Source: Podarcis muralis (taxonomy: Eukaryota). Taken from it: a DNA stretch of 64,000 nucleotides. Below, piece after piece: positions 21,751 through 29,000 of the stretch; positions within the stretch are counted from its first letter, which is position 1, and each line of letters starts with the position of its first letter. The stretch lies in the NCBI RefSeq assembly GCF_964188315.1, contig NC_135655.1, positions 40,238,001 through 40,302,000 on the forward strand, in the 5' to 3' direction. A model generated the notes under the pieces. That model was not told the origin of the DNA, searched no databases, and saw nothing but the letters and a program-made list of their open reading frames with translations. A program made the position numbers and the translations under genes.

Positions 21751-22946
21751 TATATCCTACACACACTTATAAGGACTCCAATTCCCCAGTGTAATAGGAC
21801 TTCTGACTTGTGCTGCCCCCATTAAAACCATCACAAAAAAGTGATGTCAACAAAAGCAATGAGAGAGGCCAGATTACAGGAGTGTCTTAAGAATTCACTT
21901 AAGCCTCTTTGGCCTTTCTTGCAAAGATGGTACATCGGATGCTGCTTTTGGGATTCCTGGTGCAACACAAGGAAGCAGCATCTGAAGCACAACAGAACAA
22001 CTTAATGTCACCCTTTTGCTATGTGCTGATGATTCAAATGCGTTGAAACCACAGATTGGGGCTGCCCCTTTGAAGGGACCCTTGTATGAAACGACCGCCA
22101 CATTGTGAACATGCAACCGATTAACGCAGCTACCACTCTTGCAACTGCTACATTTAAATTAACAATTTCATCCCTTTATAAAATCTAACAATTACCAGAG
22201 GGGTAGCCAGGTTAATAACCTGCTGCAGTACAAACAATAGTTTTGTGGCACCTTAAACAGCTAAGATTGCCACCTTAACTAGTGGAGGGTGGGGGAGGCA
22301 AAGAAATATCGGTGAACAACTACTGCAACGCTGGCAAGAGAGGAATGCATGCCTAAGGAATCAAATCCTCGCAGGGAGAAGGGATGTAATCACAACAAGG
22401 CCTTGCTCCCCCTTTCCCCGCCAGAAAAAAAGGCAGGGTTTTCACAGGAGTCAGACCTTAGGTGGGTTATTGCAATCACCCCCACTTATTCCTCTCTTGA
22501 ATAGGTGGAGCAATGCAAAGCTTTTTTCCCCCTTTTCTTTCTTTCAAAGCAATGCAACCTTTTACCGTAGGGCTGCGAACGCGAAGCGAATCCGCCGCCC
22601 GCGGCTTCCACCGCGCGGAGTTCTAGAACGGAGCGTGCGTAAGCAGCTGCACGCCTCGTGCCCGGAGGGTGCTAAAAGCGGAGCGCGCCAGCCCTTCCTT
22701 TGCAGAAGAGGAAGAGGAGGCGGCCACGGGGAAAGCCAACTTCGCGGGACGGAGGGAAATGCACGCGCCTTGCACCGTGCAGGCTCCAACTGCTTCCCTC
22801 TCTTCTGCAGCGGGGCTGGCTCTCTGGCCCTGGCGCCTAACTCTCCTCGCTCCCCTCCCCGCGCGTGTGGCCTTGTGCACAACTCCGCGTATCCCTCCGC
22901 GGTGCGCGTGCGAGACACTCGCAACTCTTTGAAAATAAGCGAGCGA

Positions 22947-22997
22947 GGGAACTACTTTCGGGAAACTATTTTTGCATGGCGGGCTGGGAATGTGGTC
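22947..22997. promoter_or_regulatory. Candidate ZNF143/THAP11 (ACTACA-SBS) motif pair
   Basis: ggaactac on plus, and gaccacattcccagcccgcc on minus, resembling ACTACAnTTCCCAGnATGC. Motif match only. Confidence 0.35.
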
Positions 22998-24039
22998 ATT
23001 TAGTCTCTTCCCCTCCCTCCTGTTCTTCCTTGGAGGTAGCCCAGCCAAAAAAGAAGGAAAAAAGAGCGACTCCTTTAGGAGAGGCATGAGACTTCAGGGC
23101 CTCGGTAGCAAGAGCCTCTTTCTTTCTAGGCACGGGGTGGCAAAGCAAACCACCCGAGAACCAACTTGGGTTTTGCTCCGACTTGTGCCCTCCACTGTTC
23201 CATTGGGAGGAACCCGCTTCCTCGGGTGACCAGCCAGTCTCGAGCAGGAAGAGAGCTTTGCGTGGCCTCCATAATAAAATCCCTTCGCGCCACAACCCGG
23301 GGGTTTTATTGTGCAAACTTGAGGAACATTCCCGATATTTGCTCATTTGCTTATTTATTTATTTATTTGAGGGGCGGCGAATGAGCAGCCAAAGGAAACC
23401 CCCCCCCTCCGGCCTTGGAAGCGCGCGAAGGAACAGCAAGTTTGTGCTGTCCGGCTGCCCAGAGAGAGGGGAGGGAATCGGGGCCCTTGGCAGCCGTGTT
23501 CCTCCGAGTGAAGGGGCTCGGGGCGCCAGCCGCGTGCAAAGAGGGAAGGCGACGTAGCCCGCCTATGTGTGTGTGTGGGGGGGGGGCGCTTCTCCGCCCT
23601 TCCCCAGCCCCGTGGCAAAAAAAAAAAAAAAAAAAGTTCTGCGCCCTTCGGCGGCTCCTTCGGACGGAGGCGCTTCTCAAGTGCCCGGGCTCTCCTTTCC
23701 CGTCCGTCGCCTCGGAGAGTTGGCGGCGGAAGGAGCGTGAAGTCAACGCTTCCGCCCAGTTTTCCAGTCAGAGGAGGAAGGGGGGGGGGGCGCAGAGAGA
23801 GAGGCTCGGGGGCTGTGGCTGCTCCGGGTGGGCCTGGGGAGCAGCTCCTGAACTTGCTCGCCTTCTCGGTTGGGGAGAGGGCGGGGTGCCAGGGCTGGTG
23901 GCGGAGGAGGAGAAGGACGAGCTCTTCCTACTTCTCCTCTCGGCTTCTCCTCTTTCCTCCTCCTCCTCCTCCTCCTCCAGCGCCACCAGCCGTGACGCAT
24001 CCTCCCCTCCCCTTTTCTAACCTCCGGGCTGCTTTCAAA

Positions 24040-24106
24040 CTCCCCCCTCCCTCCTCCTTTCCTCCTCCTCCTCCTCTTCCTCCCTCTTTCCCTCCCTCTC
24101 CTTTTC
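24040..24106 (+). repeat. 67-nt pure polypyrimidine (CCT-rich) tract
   Basis: Only C and T from 24040 to 24106. A second (CCT)n run is at ~23953-23977. Confidence 0.9.
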
Positions 24107-24414
24107 GCCTGCCTGGGGCTGAATTAGTTTCCCTCAGTGCTGCCTCTGCTTGTTGGCGGGGTAGTCGGACTTGAGCCGCCTGCTTTCCCCCTCCTTCCTT
24201 TTTTGTAAAAATCGGGTTTGCAGACGCTGCTGCTGCTGCGGGCGTCCGGAGGAATTTCTGCCGCGGTGCTTTTCCGTCCTGCCCCGGGGGTTTGGCAGCG
24301 AGGAAGGGACGCGGCGGGGAGCTGGGGGGACCTGCTCGTGGGGACGAGGGGAGGGGGGTGAAGCAAGGAAGCCAGGAGGCCAGGCTTGAGGAGCTGCTGC
24401 TGCGGCAGCGGGAG

Positions 24415-24456
24415 ATGTGGGCTCCTGGTGCCGATGCGGCACAAGGACACGGCTAG
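24415..24456 (+). other. Candidate uORF1 (MWAPGADAAQGHG*)
   Basis: ATG at 24415 to TAG. Functional only if it lies within the transcribed leader. Confidence 0.3.
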
Positions 24457-24511
24457 GGAGCCTCGCTTGCAGCCGAGGCGCCGCCGCCGCCAGCCGCCCG
24501 GTTCCCGGTGA
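24434..24511 (+). other. Candidate uORF2 (MRHKDTAREPRLQPRRRRQPPGSR*)
   Basis: ATG at 24434 to TGA, overlapping uORF1. Functional only if it lies within the transcribed leader. Confidence 0.3.
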
Positions 24512-24719
24512 AAAAGACCAGAAAGAGCTTCGATTGCTGCCGCCGCCAAAGCAGAAATCAGTCCCAACTCTCGGCCGAACAGGATCCCTCCGTTTCCGTG
24601 CGAAGAAGAGGCGGGGAAGGCTGCTGTTGCTGCTGCTGCTTTCGGAGGGGGACCCACCTCAAGGATTGAGGCCATTCTGGCGGAAGGGTGTGCAGTGGGG
24701 GCATCGGTGGGGTTTAACA

Positions 24720-24797
24720 ATGGTGAGGTTTCTGGTGAGCTCCTGCTGCGCCCTGGCTGCGTCGGTGCTGCTCCATCCCCGGATCGGATCACGGTGA
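24720..24797 (+). other. Proximal uORF in the SPRED1 leader (MVRFLVSSCCALAASVLLHPRIGSR*)
   Basis: ACAATGG strong Kozak context, 25 codons, TGA ending 7 nt before the SPRED1 ATG, out of frame with it. Confidence 0.6.
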
Positions 24798-24804
24798 GGA
24801 AAAA

Positions 24805-24836
24805 ATGAGCGAAGAGACGGCGAATTCTAACAACGA
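24805..24836 (+). CDS. SPRED1: SPRED1 (Sprouty-related EVH1 domain protein 1), first coding exon only
   Basis: ATGAGCGAAGAGACGGCGAATTCTAACAACGA|GTAAGT gives MSEETANSNN(D/E), matching human MSEETATSDND. It has a 32-nt coding portion with a phase-2 donor, as I recall for human exon 1, and lies inside a CpG island. Confidence 0.88.
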
Positions 24837-26054
24837 GTAAGTTTCTCGGCTTTTCTTCGGGGCTGGGGGTCTCTTCGGCTTGGCGTTTCTCTCTCCCCAC
24901 CCGCCCCTACCGTTCATTGACTTGCTCTCTTCGGGCTCCTTACATAGCTGGCTCCGTACGGATAGGTTGATGTGTGTGTCTCTCTGCATATGTAAACACC
25001 CCCCACCCCCCCGAATCTGACTGTTTTGGTAATTTGGAAAAGTCATGGCAGACCCAGGATATGGTGAAAAAATTGCCTAGCTATGTGTGTTGAGGAATTG
25101 GACCCTCCGTCTCCCGCCCGCCACCCCCCTCGACCCTCAACTTCCAGTGGCCTACGTGCAACGTTTTGTGGGGGGGAAAGAAGTCTATTTTCGTTTGCAT
25201 GTTTCCTATAGAAAGTAGTGAGTGGGAGCTTCATCCCGAGGGAAACTGTTCCTGAATTTTAATTGGATGAGTCAGTGTAAATACAGTGTTAAACCTTTCC
25301 CCAAAGCTTTATATATACATTTTAACGAGCTGTTAGGATTCTTCGCCCTTCCCCCCCTTCTTTAAATGGGGAATAGAATGAAGGTATTTATATATATAAC
25401 GTGCAAGATATTAATATATTTAACATGCTTGGCTTGGATGAAATCTATTGGGGGCTTATGTTTTCTTTTTTTATATCTGTAGGGATGTAGCCTTCAAAAT
25501 TGCTATGAAATATATAATTTCTGAAACAGGGTAGTCATGTCAACAATCCTGAACTTTCCCATTTCTTCTAAAGAATGAAAAATGTTGACGCTGCCTGTGA
25601 CTCCTGCATCCTGCCCTGTCAATGGTTGTTCTTTTCTGCAAGAATGAGTTGCGAATTAGTCATTTTCTCAAACATACTTTGCAATAGTTGTGGCTCAATT
25701 ATAGTGCAAAAGCATCCTTCTGGCAGAATTATCACACGGTAATTATTTTTCCAGTGCCTGTAGCAAGTAATTTGAATTGTAGGAGGAAATACTGGTTTTT
25801 GGTGGAGAAGGGAACACTTGTCAGTTGCATACATTCCTCCATATAAAACCTTAATTCCTTAAGATGGATCGGTAAAGGAACAGGCTTCTGCTTCTGCTTC
25901 TGCTTTTTTAATGAATGGCTTTACTCTTAAGCCAGAATCACATAATATAACAAGGACAAATCCTGAACTGCAACAGGAACAAGTACAAAACATTGTATTG
26001 AGCTACTTGGTAAGATGAAGTGCTGCAGTGCCCGTGGAACCGAGAGGGAAGCGG

Positions 26055-26064
26055 CCGCCATATT
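26055..26064 (-). promoter_or_regulatory. YY1 consensus site in proximal intron 1
   Basis: CCGCCATATT matches CCGCCATNTT, in a small CpG-containing patch 1.2 kb downstream of exon 1. Motif match only. Confidence 0.4.
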
Positions 26065-29000
26065 TTCTTTTTTGTGAATCGCTCTAATTTGCATACCACA
26101 GTCTTCATTCATAAAAAATAATAATTAGACCTATGCCACCTTCGACATTCGACTGAACATGGCTTGCAAGAAATGGGAAATTTTCATGAAGGTAGAAAGA
26201 GCCTAGTATGTTCGAGGTTTAGGGTTTTCTGGATTTTCGTCTCGAAAAATACTGTTCTCTGCTTGTTGACACTGTTATGTGGGAAATATCGGCTCGGGGA
26301 AGTGCTGGGAGCACGTGATCCTCTCCATTCATAAAATACCTGGCTGGCCATTCACAGTGCAGTACACTGTGTCTACATGGATCCACTTTCACATTAGACC
26401 TGTTTTTCTAAAAGAAAGGCACAGATTTGTGTCAGGGTATCTGCAAAAGCACCACCTTGCTTGCCAGAATATGAAAAGAAGTGTGCTTTTAAAAGAAAAA
26501 AATCGAGGCCATAATCTGAGGACTGCTGTAATGTCACTAAGGGATCTTTGGGGTGGTAGAGGATAGAATCTTCTAGTAGCTAGCTTCCTTTTTTTAATGT
26601 GGCACATCAGAAACTGCCAGTATTTCTAAAACAATACAAGATTATGTGAAAGTGGCTTAAGACGTAAACACTGCTATAACTGAAGCAGCAGCAAAACGTT
26701 TCACCCTGTTTACTTGTGCAGTTTTGCGGACCTTGCTGGTTGATATTCACGCCGTAATCGGCCCCTGTATTTTAATTGAAGAAAAGTTAATAAGATTATT
26801 AATTAGATATTGCATTTTACAATAAAAGTGCTATTATGCAGTCAACTTTCATTAAGCATTTTAAAGCCAGTCAAATGTAAAATTATTGAAATACATTCTC
26901 AAGATTAGTCACAAAAGCTGTCTGAATGTGATTGCTGGGGAAGAGCCCTTTGTTAATGCATATATTTCTGTGTGCCACTTGGTGCATGCATTTCTGTGTC
27001 ACCCCATGATTCTGTGGCACTTTAGCATAAATATTTGAACAAAGACCAATTGATTATGCTTTTAGGACAACATAGAATATTTATTTAATTAAGAGAAAAT
27101 GTTTTCTTCAATAGTTAGGATGCAAAAACACCTTCAGAACATTTGATTATAACGTAAAATGTGTTTGTCAGTCTGAATTGTATTCTTCATCTCTTCGATT
27201 CGTCTTTTGTATCGCCATCATACAGGAATTTCATAACTGAAGAAAATGCTAGAACACATCTACATATTCATACCGATTTTTCCTTCCTTGTGTTCTCATC
27301 AGGCTCTCCAGTCACATTTTGAATTTCTCTTCTTGGAATCGAAGTGATCTTCTATGCTTTGCGTGGATTAGCTTAGGGTTCTTTAAAAGTTGATTTTATG
27401 AACTTGATATAGTGGAAAATACAGTACACAGCTGCGGCTGCTGCTGCCACAGTCATCCATGCTTAAATATGGCAACCAATAATTCTAGTTTGCATCGGTT
27501 CACAGTTTTCACTTTGAAAAGTTCCTTGCATTCTAATGAATTGTGTAGTATATTGTCCATGCTGAGTACAGTTAGTTAGGCCTTAACTGTGTTATGTGTG
27601 TCTGACTGTATATGCAAAAAGCAACTTGCAGTGTTCAGTATACAACCATTTATATTACAGGACCGTTGTTAATTGTATTTTTCTCTTTTGAAAGCAGTAC
27701 GTTGGTTAGATTTTGTTATTGCAGCTGCACAACTCAATTTTCCGGGAGTTTTTAACAACAAACCTCACCAGTTTGTGTGTTAGCCTGGTATGCTGTCAGA
27801 AAAAGTGTTTATGGTTTCACAGTACTATGCATTATATAAATCTTGTTTTCCTCATCTTTCTCTAGCATGTTTTGTTTTTAAGATACATATCTCCCAAGTC
27901 TTCTGCAGTCCTACTTTTTCCGTTGCTTGCTGGATGGGCCAAATTACTATGGCAAGTTGTATATTAGTGACTAATCACTTCATTAATTAGAAAGTAGTCT
28001 GATATCTGTTCACATGAAGTTGCAAGTAAATTTTGGATATTTTTGTTTCTAATGTGACTTGACACTGTGTTTTGTCATGTTCATTTGCATTTTAAAAGAA
28101 AGATACTAGGTTTCAGTTCAATAGGTCAGGGCTTTAAACTTTTTGAACATTGTCGAATTCCATTTTAGGGAAAGTAACTATATGCATGGGATTGCAGATC
28201 TGAAGTGTGCTTGATAAATTGATATGGGGCCTAACTGTAATGTATGTGTATATAGTTTTGTTCGGATCCCTTATTAAGCATGCCATTTCAAAGGGAGTCA
28301 CGCAGAAAATGCCATCTGAGTAAAATAAATAAATGGAGGTAATGATGGTTCCCTATATGCTAAAAGTAATATTCATGCAAACATTATGATACCAAAATAT
28401 TGCCTCTGTAGACTACTGCTTGAGAGAATGAAACTCTGGTTGTTTTCTTCCCCCAGTCATTCATGGAAACTGTTCAGAGGTTATTACTTGGTGCTTGAGC
28501 TTCTACCCTGGTTGCACCTGGTTCCAGGCCTTGGCCACTCTTGGATAGAAAGCAACTAGTGGACAGACAGACCCTGTCTAATGCAAACCTGAGGCTCTAA
28601 TGGAAAATCTAGCAATTCAGTGACTTGCAACCAGGAGTCCTTTTTGAATCCTGCTTATACAGTAGTTGATTTGGGACTAGTTTAGCTTTTACAAGCCATA
28701 TTCGCATGCCGTTGAATGCCCAGTAAGTTGTCTTCTTGCTATTATGTTCCAGTTTTTCTTGTAACAAAAATTAAAATGCATGTTGTACATTTCCGGGGGG
28801 GGGGGGGGGGGATTGTGATGCCACAGAAGCCCAGTGGCGCTTATATTCAAAGGCATACCCGTGATCGTCCTTTTCTTAAGACTGATTTAGTCTTTAAAAT
28901 CTACCATGCAAAAGCATTGATTCTCATTCAATATGGAGACATCCTTTAATGTCATATATGAAAATTACATTTATACAGAGAGAGAGAGAGATGCACAATG

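Follow-up and report, generated by a model that had tools for sequence, protein, structure and literature searches.

A conserved upstream open reading frame ending seven nucleotides before the presumed SPRED1 start codon probably acts as a position-dependent translational brake

The window analysed here is a stretch of 64,000 nt from the genome of the lizard Podarcis muralis (RefSeq assembly GCF_964188315.1, contig NC_135655.1, positions 40,238,001 to 40,302,000 of the forward strand), and all coordinates below are counted from its first letter. It contains exon 1 of a main open reading frame (ORF) that is preceded by a small upstream ORF (uORF): an upstream ATG (uATG, 24720–24722) opens a frame of 25 codons, which sequence reading and translation show to be closed by a TGA at 24795–24797, that is, in frame and before the main ORF, as in a position-conserved uORF. 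The main ATG (24805–24807) lies 85 nt from the uATG, so that the two frames differ. The elements of this region are as follows.

24714 to 24723, plus strand: initiation context of the uAUG, TAACAATGG, optimal, with A at −3 and G at +4
24720 to 24797, plus strand: uORF, 25 codons followed by TGA, in a frame other than that of the main ORF
24798 to 24804, plus strand: intercistronic spacer, GGAAAAA, 7 nt, purines throughout
24805 to 24836, plus strand: exon-1 coding sequence of the main ORF (taken as SPRED1), MSEETANSNN plus a split codon
24828 to 24830, plus strand: following stop codon of the uORF frame, TAA, located 24 nt inside the main coding sequence (TGA at the equivalent place in the bat)
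24837 to 24842, plus strand: exon-1 5′ splice site, GTAAGT, opening a phase-2 intron, with GTAAG the same in all six sequences compared below

An earlier note on this DNA had described the 25-codon uORF in a strong context, the 7-nt GGAAAAA gap, and the out-of-frame main AUG, and reading and translation of the sequence bear this description out, with two corrections of detail. The codon count given there implied an exon-1 coding sequence of 33 nt, which is actually 32 nt long (10 codons and 2 nt) and ends at the donor GA/GTAAGT between 24836 and 24837, hence the phase-2 intron. The main AUG, said to stand in a weaker context, has A at −3 in every species compared and is missing only the G at +4, so that its context is adequate. 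The TAA within TAACAATGG is an in-frame stop for the frame of the main ORF, and loss of the uORF stop would lead to an 11-codon extension across the main AUG, ending at 24828–24830.

SPRED1, which comprises an N-terminal EVH1 domain, a KBD, and a Sprouty-related domain, restrains RAS-ERK signalling in a dosage-sensitive manner, and its heterozygous loss leads to Legius syndrome. The main ORF is taken to be SPRED1 on the strength of its 10 exon-1 codons, MSEETANSNN, which presumably correspond to the N-terminus of that protein; these codons are also conserved in the bat contig. No EVH1 exon or any later coding exon of the main gene was found within the window. A CpG island (GC content 0.54–0.66, from about 22250 to 25000) has the uORF and the main start at its 3′ edge. 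Within this island, at 23865–24020, there is also a GA-rich/CT-rich imperfect palindrome with many sub-threshold matches to Rfam miRNA families; it was rejected as a miRNA, the best match reaching 37.6 bits where the gathering score is 85, and is read as low-complexity hairpin potential.

Orthologous loci were sought with a 258-aa antisense ORF that spans the region and is an artefact of GC content. A word search with this handle yielded three related ORFs and a region-restricted search a fourth, a further search started from the bird-like version of the antisense ORF added nothing, and a profile of a conserved stretch of 49–54 residues gave two more weak matches in a library of 1.84 billion proteins. 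Exact-sequence look-up of the antisense 258-aa and sense 126-aa ORFs of the window returned no match. The contigs encoding the matched ORFs were then compared as DNA loci. The antisense ORFs themselves were rejected as genes, as they are GC-content artefacts conserved only where they overlap the conserved block described below. All six-sequence comparisons comprise the window lizard, the skink, one sequence each of the three sauropsid-type species (L002–L004), and the bat; sampled as they were through called antisense ORFs, these taxa are biased to species retaining the entire block, and mammals are represented by a single sequence.

L001, SRR31508491: skink Prasinohaema aff. flavipes, HiFi data (PMC12400806)
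L002, L003, and L004 to L006: three sauropsid-type species, probably birds, 87–91% alike over 1 kb and with the lizard architecture
L011, SRR24955932: northern bat Eptesicus nilssonii, Omni-C data (PMC10838120)

The contigs L004, L005, and L006 come from three runs of one study; they are about 990 nt long, have near-identical ends, and carry the conserved block at their centre, a shape from which we infer a resemblance to sequence capture of an ultraconserved-element locus. Four further contigs (L007, positions 840–1030 on the minus strand, and also L008–L010), occurring in many samples, carry a mammal-like, decayed copy of the uORF and exon 1, in which ATGGTGAGG is kept, the main ATG has become ATC, many CpG-to-TpG differences from the bat are present, and the upstream flank is AT-rich and unrelated. 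These copies, which may be a pseudogene or a duplicated fragment and are possibly of human origin, were left out of every alignment and count.

Comparison of the six sequences revealed a sharply bounded block of conservation.

24709 to 24842, plus strand: conserved island, reaching from the context of the uAUG as far as the splice donor, delimited by BLAST and alignment

Between the lizard and L002–L004 this island is 85–89% identical (BLAST), and the remaining leader and the intron are unalignable. Between lizard and skink, whose leaders are 66% identical over 1.1 kb, the island shows 95.9% and the flanks 61.7% identity (P = 9e-19), and among L002–L004 the corresponding values are 97.6–100% and 87–92% (P = 1e-3 to 3e-5). 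Within the island, a uATG preceded by a purine at −3 and followed by G at +4, an equal frame offset, the TGA, and a spacer of seven purines were found in six of the six sequences. The letters around these elements vary: the uATG context is TAACAATGG in lizard and skink, GTAACAATGG in L002–L004, and CCACCATGG in the bat, and the spacer reads GGAAAAA in lizard and skink, GGAGAAA in L002–L004, and GGGAAAG in the bat, being 7 nt long everywhere. The orthologous uORFs measure 25 codons in the lizard and L002–L004, 23 in the skink, and 39 in the bat, and the length changes (−6 nt in the skink and a net +42 nt in the bat) are multiples of three. Between bat and lizard, conservation is deepest at the two ends of the uORF, namely, ATGGTGAGG and the last 30 nt or so through the stop and spacer, with a diverged interior between them; the bat frame starts with MVR and ends with IGSR* like that of the lizard, in agreement with the mammalian frame cited in the earlier note, and its interior is mostly different and Leu-rich. 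Conserved ends around a diverged interior are the signature expected of a position-dependent uORF. The first 10 codons of the main ORF are near-invariant across species, synonymous sites included.

The earlier note had supposed, with reference to the human leader, that frame and peptide ends had survived indels across amniotes, and the leader alignment of lizard, skink, three sauropsid-type species, and bat now provides evidence that the uAUG, frame, stop, and 7-nt gap did: the anatomy is observed in six sequences of three amniote clades, with start, frame, stop, strength of context, and length of spacer all conserved. An ORF of 25 codons is unremarkable on its own where the leader is GC-rich, and long open frames occur here in all six frames, including the 258-aa antisense ORF and a 135-codon stretch in the uORF frame itself, as would be seen if the uORF were a chance, lineage-specific ORF without consequence. 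A chance ORF would hardly keep its ATG, frame, stop, and spacing alike in six sequences drawn from three amniote clades, nor lie in an island whose conservation so far exceeds that of its flanks. What goes beyond chance is that the uORF is retained in five other species, and this explanation is barely credible.

The surroundings of the uORF are consistent with a leader in which upstream starts are selected against. In the 300–430 nt between the second conserved upstream ATG described below and the uATG, where about three ATGs are expected, no other ATG is present in five of the six leaders, and the lizard has one, at −371 (P about 0.03–0.05 per species). This ATG-poor stretch fits a transcribed leader purged of uAUGs save the one at 24720. 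The long open frame upstream, to which the earlier note had drawn attention, does exist, as the uORF frame is free of stops back to 24390 with its earliest GTG at 24417; as a feature of possible significance it fades, being a GC-content effect that is not conserved and that is just 29–30 codons long in two bird-like sequences out of three. A non-AUG-initiated N-terminal extension was likewise rejected, because the upstream open stretch is unconserved and stops in the main frame are conserved at −90, −81, and −69.

We then considered whether the product of the uORF or its letters are the object of selection. According to one explanation, the uORF encodes a functional product, either a conserved peptide that, as a nascent chain, stalls the terminating ribosome or a free hydrophobic micropeptide, and the six-way peptide alignment does contain invariant residues (M1, V2, L5, A11, S15, V16, L17, G23, and S24), a retained hydrophobic core, and an IGSR* ending common to lizard and bat. 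The substitution pattern points elsewhere. The pN/pS ratio of the uORF was about 0.4–1.5 by the Nei-Gojobori method, on tiny counts of 2–13 changes per pair and hence with low power, and does not lie well under 1 as Ka/Ks should for a conserved-peptide uORF; the nine variable columns, of which 3, 2, and 4 fall at codon positions 1, 2, and 3, respectively, show no third-position excess. The C-terminus varies, being IGSR in lizard and bat, LGSR in the skink, and VGSR or VGSW in L002–L004, with only G and S invariant; the bat uORF is a net 14 codons longer with a largely different interior; and a Pfam search with the uORF peptide gave no match. A functional peptide is for these reasons very unlikely, and the selected peptide suggested by the earlier note finds no support, all the more since the synonymous sites of sauropsid codons 1–18 are nearly frozen: pS there is just 0.07–0.13, though neutral sites between these clades are saturated. 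What selection preserves is thus the letters, together with where the ORF starts and stops, its frame, and its spacing; no selection on the peptide is detectable. A purely position-dependent uORF would need no synonymous conservation in codons 1–18, so that some other constraint on the letters would have to coexist with it.

A possible source of such a constraint, missed by the earlier reader, is a set of GGTGAG hexamers, each of which matches the 5′ splice-site consensus at G/GUGAG. Three of them lie in the 85 nt of uORF and spacer (at 24722, 24734, and 24793).

24722 to 24727, plus strand: GGTGAG motif 1, overlapping the uAUG, kept in skink and bat, GGTGAA in L002–L004
24734 to 24739, plus strand: GGTGAG motif 2, invariant in the sauropsid sequences, missing at that place in the bat
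24793 to 24798, plus strand: GGTGAG motif 3, holding the uORF TGA, invariant and at position −12 relative to the main ATG in each of the six sequences

Three such hexamers were obtained in none of 20,000 dinucleotide shuffles of the 85 nt, the 2.2 kb of CpG island upstream hold not one, and the whole plus strand of the window holds only 15. The cluster is, in short, consensus-like, above chance, and conserved. From this cluster and the frozen synonymous sites it is evident that a second constraint, at the level of nucleic acid, coexists with the uORF, and the cluster would offer a non-translational reason for part of the conservation; conservation of the start and stop could be partly due to their embedding in GGTGAG(G) motifs.

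Taken further, the same evidence leads to an explanation in which the island is conserved for a nucleic-acid reason and the ORF is incidental. The GGUGAG cluster, resembling U1 snRNP/5′ splice sites, would then serve exon definition, in support of transcription or telescripting, or as unproductive alternative donors that remove the main AUG; as a variant, the island might possibly be another DNA or RNA element bound by protein. Besides the enrichment of the hexamer, this explanation has in its favour that motifs 2 and 3 are invariant in sauropsids, that the bat retains motifs 1 and 3 and carries an extra GGTGAG 15 nt upstream of its own uATG, and that synonymous sites are near-frozen both in uORF codons 1–18 and in the first 10 main codons, with pN/pS of about 1. 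It leaves unexplained, however, the indels in multiples of three, the exact 7-nt spacer, the ATG-poor rest of the leader, and an optimal uATG context achieved with different flanking letters in bat and sauropsids; moreover, motif 1 is weakened in L002–L004 and motif 2 has been lost in place in the bat. As the sole account of the island we regard it as unlikely. It is compatible with the uORF reading, and the two are not mutually exclusive.

A structured RNA, in contrast, was rejected as a basis for the conservation: the block folds worse than 200 of 200 dinucleotide shuffles (z +2.67), the consensus fold has one compensatory pair, which is located in the flank, and an Rfam search detected no family in the conserved block.

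The donor-like motifs also give rise to two readings in which the uORF is joined to splicing. If motif 3 were used as a donor (24793/24794), the TGA, the spacer, and the main ATG would be spliced out, and the 74 nt beginning with the uATG would be joined in frame to exon 2. The uATG would then be an alternative protein start for a SPRED1 isoform with a hydrophobic, signal-peptide-like N-terminus. The 74 nt are of phase 2, matching the 32-nt exon 1, with the TGA inside GTGAGG; this geometry holds in each species with an intact uORF, and the segment is hydrophobic in all species (mean Kyte-Doolittle value about 2 for residues 4–18) and Leu-rich in the bat. A match of phase has a chance of 1 in 3, however, the hydrophobicity may merely follow from CTG/GCN-rich DNA, and an alternative start would not need the conserved 7-nt spacer. 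An ER signal on a cytosolic inhibitor of the RAS pathway would also be biologically odd, and we consider this explanation highly improbable. In the second reading, the uORF and the donor-like motifs would form one coupled splicing-translation switch that has acted on SPRED1 dosage since the amniote ancestor, with the choice among four exon-1 donors setting the outcome: the normal donor would give the braked main AUG, 24722 or 24734 would delete the main AUG and leave the product out of frame, and 24793 would give the fusion of uORF and exon 2. A switch of this kind is distinctly unlikely.

Collectively, these comparisons favour an ancient, conserved, AUG-initiated uORF in the leader of the presumed SPRED1 that probably acts through its position and not through its peptide; most likely, it is an ordinary, previously undescribed brake on SPRED1 protein production. 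The presence of the uAUG in mature mRNA is suggested by its 85-nt nearness to the main AUG, the shared conserved block, and the ATG-depleted leader, and together with translation of the uORF and repression of the main ORF it would provide the following mechanism. Scanning 43S complexes would meet the uAUG in its optimal context, and most ribosomes would initiate there, translate 25 codons, and terminate at the UGA 7 nt 5′ of the main AUG. With usual footprint geometry, a ribosome with the UGA in its A site would reach about 15 nt beyond the P-site codon, physically covering the main AUG, and a post-termination 40S subunit would need to acquire a new ternary complex within only 7 nt, so that re-initiation at the main AUG should be poor; short intercistronic spacing is known to hinder re-initiation (Kozak 1987, as summarized in the review PMC3045505). 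SPRED1 synthesis would be left to a minority of ribosomes, which either scan leakily past the uAUG or re-initiate across the short gap. The outcome would be a constitutive dosage brake, which could be tuned by initiation-factor status, as in the uORFs of C/EBP-alpha and C/EBP-beta. Some sensitivity to NMD is possible, because the uORF stop lies upstream of all exon junctions. The putative translational brake of the earlier note is a sound mechanistic inference.

Several other conserved elements lie in the vicinity, two of them in the leader or promoter.

24405 to 24417, plus strand: motif GCAGCGGGAGATG containing a second upstream ATG (24415–24417, at −390), found between −389 and −560 in each of the six sequences
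24248 to 24264, plus strand: leader or promoter block GGAGGAATTTCTGCCGC, present in lizard, skink, and L003, and in the bat with a 2-nt gap

The ORF opened by the uATG at 24415 ranges from 13 to 42 codons and differs in sequence and frame between species; this element may be a conserved uAUG1 or a promoter or TSS-proximal DNA motif. The GGAGGAATTTCTGCCGC block, which precedes the main ATG by about 510–664 nt, may be an element of the promoter or TSS, and the contigs of L002 and L004 end short of it. Farther upstream, about 1.9 kb from the main ATG, 37 nt (22931–22967) are 84% identical to the bat contig. In intron 1, an element at 25199–25307 shows about 83% identity with L003 and L004–L006, 79% (over a longer stretch) with L002, and 75% with the bat, and is also present in the skink; another at 26021–26373 is 71% identical to the bat over 395 nt. 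These conserved non-coding elements of intron 1 are probably enhancers.

A search covering the full text of articles found no paper treating a SPRED1 uORF; the spred1 leader was one of the validation reporters in a zebrafish study, where it drew no comment. Conserved-peptide uORFs (CPuORFs; Takahashi et al. 2020, PMC7530721) resemble the present uORF in being AUG-initiated and conserved over a wide taxonomic range of animals, and differ in that a CPuORF must show a low Ka/Ks and, where it is known to stall ribosomes, a C-terminus that is conserved, two features that the SPRED1 uORF does not clearly display; SPRED1 may nevertheless be listed in the tables of that catalogue. If the uATG at 24415 is transcribed, the leader would also recall ATF4 and GCN4, with two conserved uAUGs of which the second would act as an inhibitory gatekeeper. 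Unlike the arrangement in that system, the second SPRED1 uORF does not overlap the main ORF, the first is 13–42 codons long, and the gap of about 180–320 nt from the stop of the first to the second uAUG should allow recovery of the ternary complex even under stress.

Other close counterparts are uORFs that act by a short gap. The uORF of HER-2/ERBB2 leaves a gap of a few nucleotides and is only about 6 codons long, and the uORFs of C/EBP are also shorter than that of SPRED1. The HER-2 uORF is likewise short, conserved, and placed just 5′ of the main AUG, and it represses mainly by the short intercistronic distance and independently of its peptide (Child, Miller and Geballe 1999, as cited in PMC3045505), as the SPRED1 uORF would; the 25–39 codons of the SPRED1 uORF should lower re-initiation further than in HER-2. 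In C/EBP-alpha and C/EBP-beta (Calkhoven et al. 2000, as reviewed in PMC3045505), a small, conserved, out-of-frame uORF ends a few nucleotides before the main AUG and works by position, as the short gap holds back re-initiation at the proximal AUG. The uORF of C/EBP-alpha ends exactly 7 bases before the p42 AUG (PMC3045505), and that of SPRED1 is similarly out of frame and ends no farther from its proximal main AUG, at 7 nt in all species. The two systems differ in the optimal context of the SPRED1 uAUG and in that ribosomes leaving the C/EBP uORF proceed, according to the published model, to a downstream in-frame AUG to yield the truncated p30 or LIP. A surprisingly high share of ribosomes re-initiate at C/EBP-alpha p42 despite the 7 nt (PMC3045505), and for this reason the brake on SPRED1 may be partial and tunable.

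Retention of the uORF for about 300 million years with a fixed gap of 7 nt would imply selection on translational control of SPRED1 dosage, and the uAUG, the UGA, and the spacer are non-coding positions where variants are expected to alter SPRED1 output. A precedent is NF1 (Whiffin et al. 2020, PMC7253449), likewise a dosage-sensitive gene that restrains RAS and has a uORF in its leader, and one that shares its pathway and clinical spectrum with SPRED1. That paper differs from the present analysis in that SPRED1 is named there only for having been screened for coding variants in NF1-negative patients, and no uORF is described for it. In NF1, stop-loss in the uORF yields an overlapping ORF that is out of frame, a change associated with disease, and leader variants have been documented in patients negative for coding mutations in both NF1 and SPRED1 (PMC7253449). 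By analogy with NF1, variants of the SPRED1 uORF would be candidates in unexplained Legius-like cases, and, alongside C/EBP and HER-2, the uORF could serve as a clean model of short-gap uORF control.
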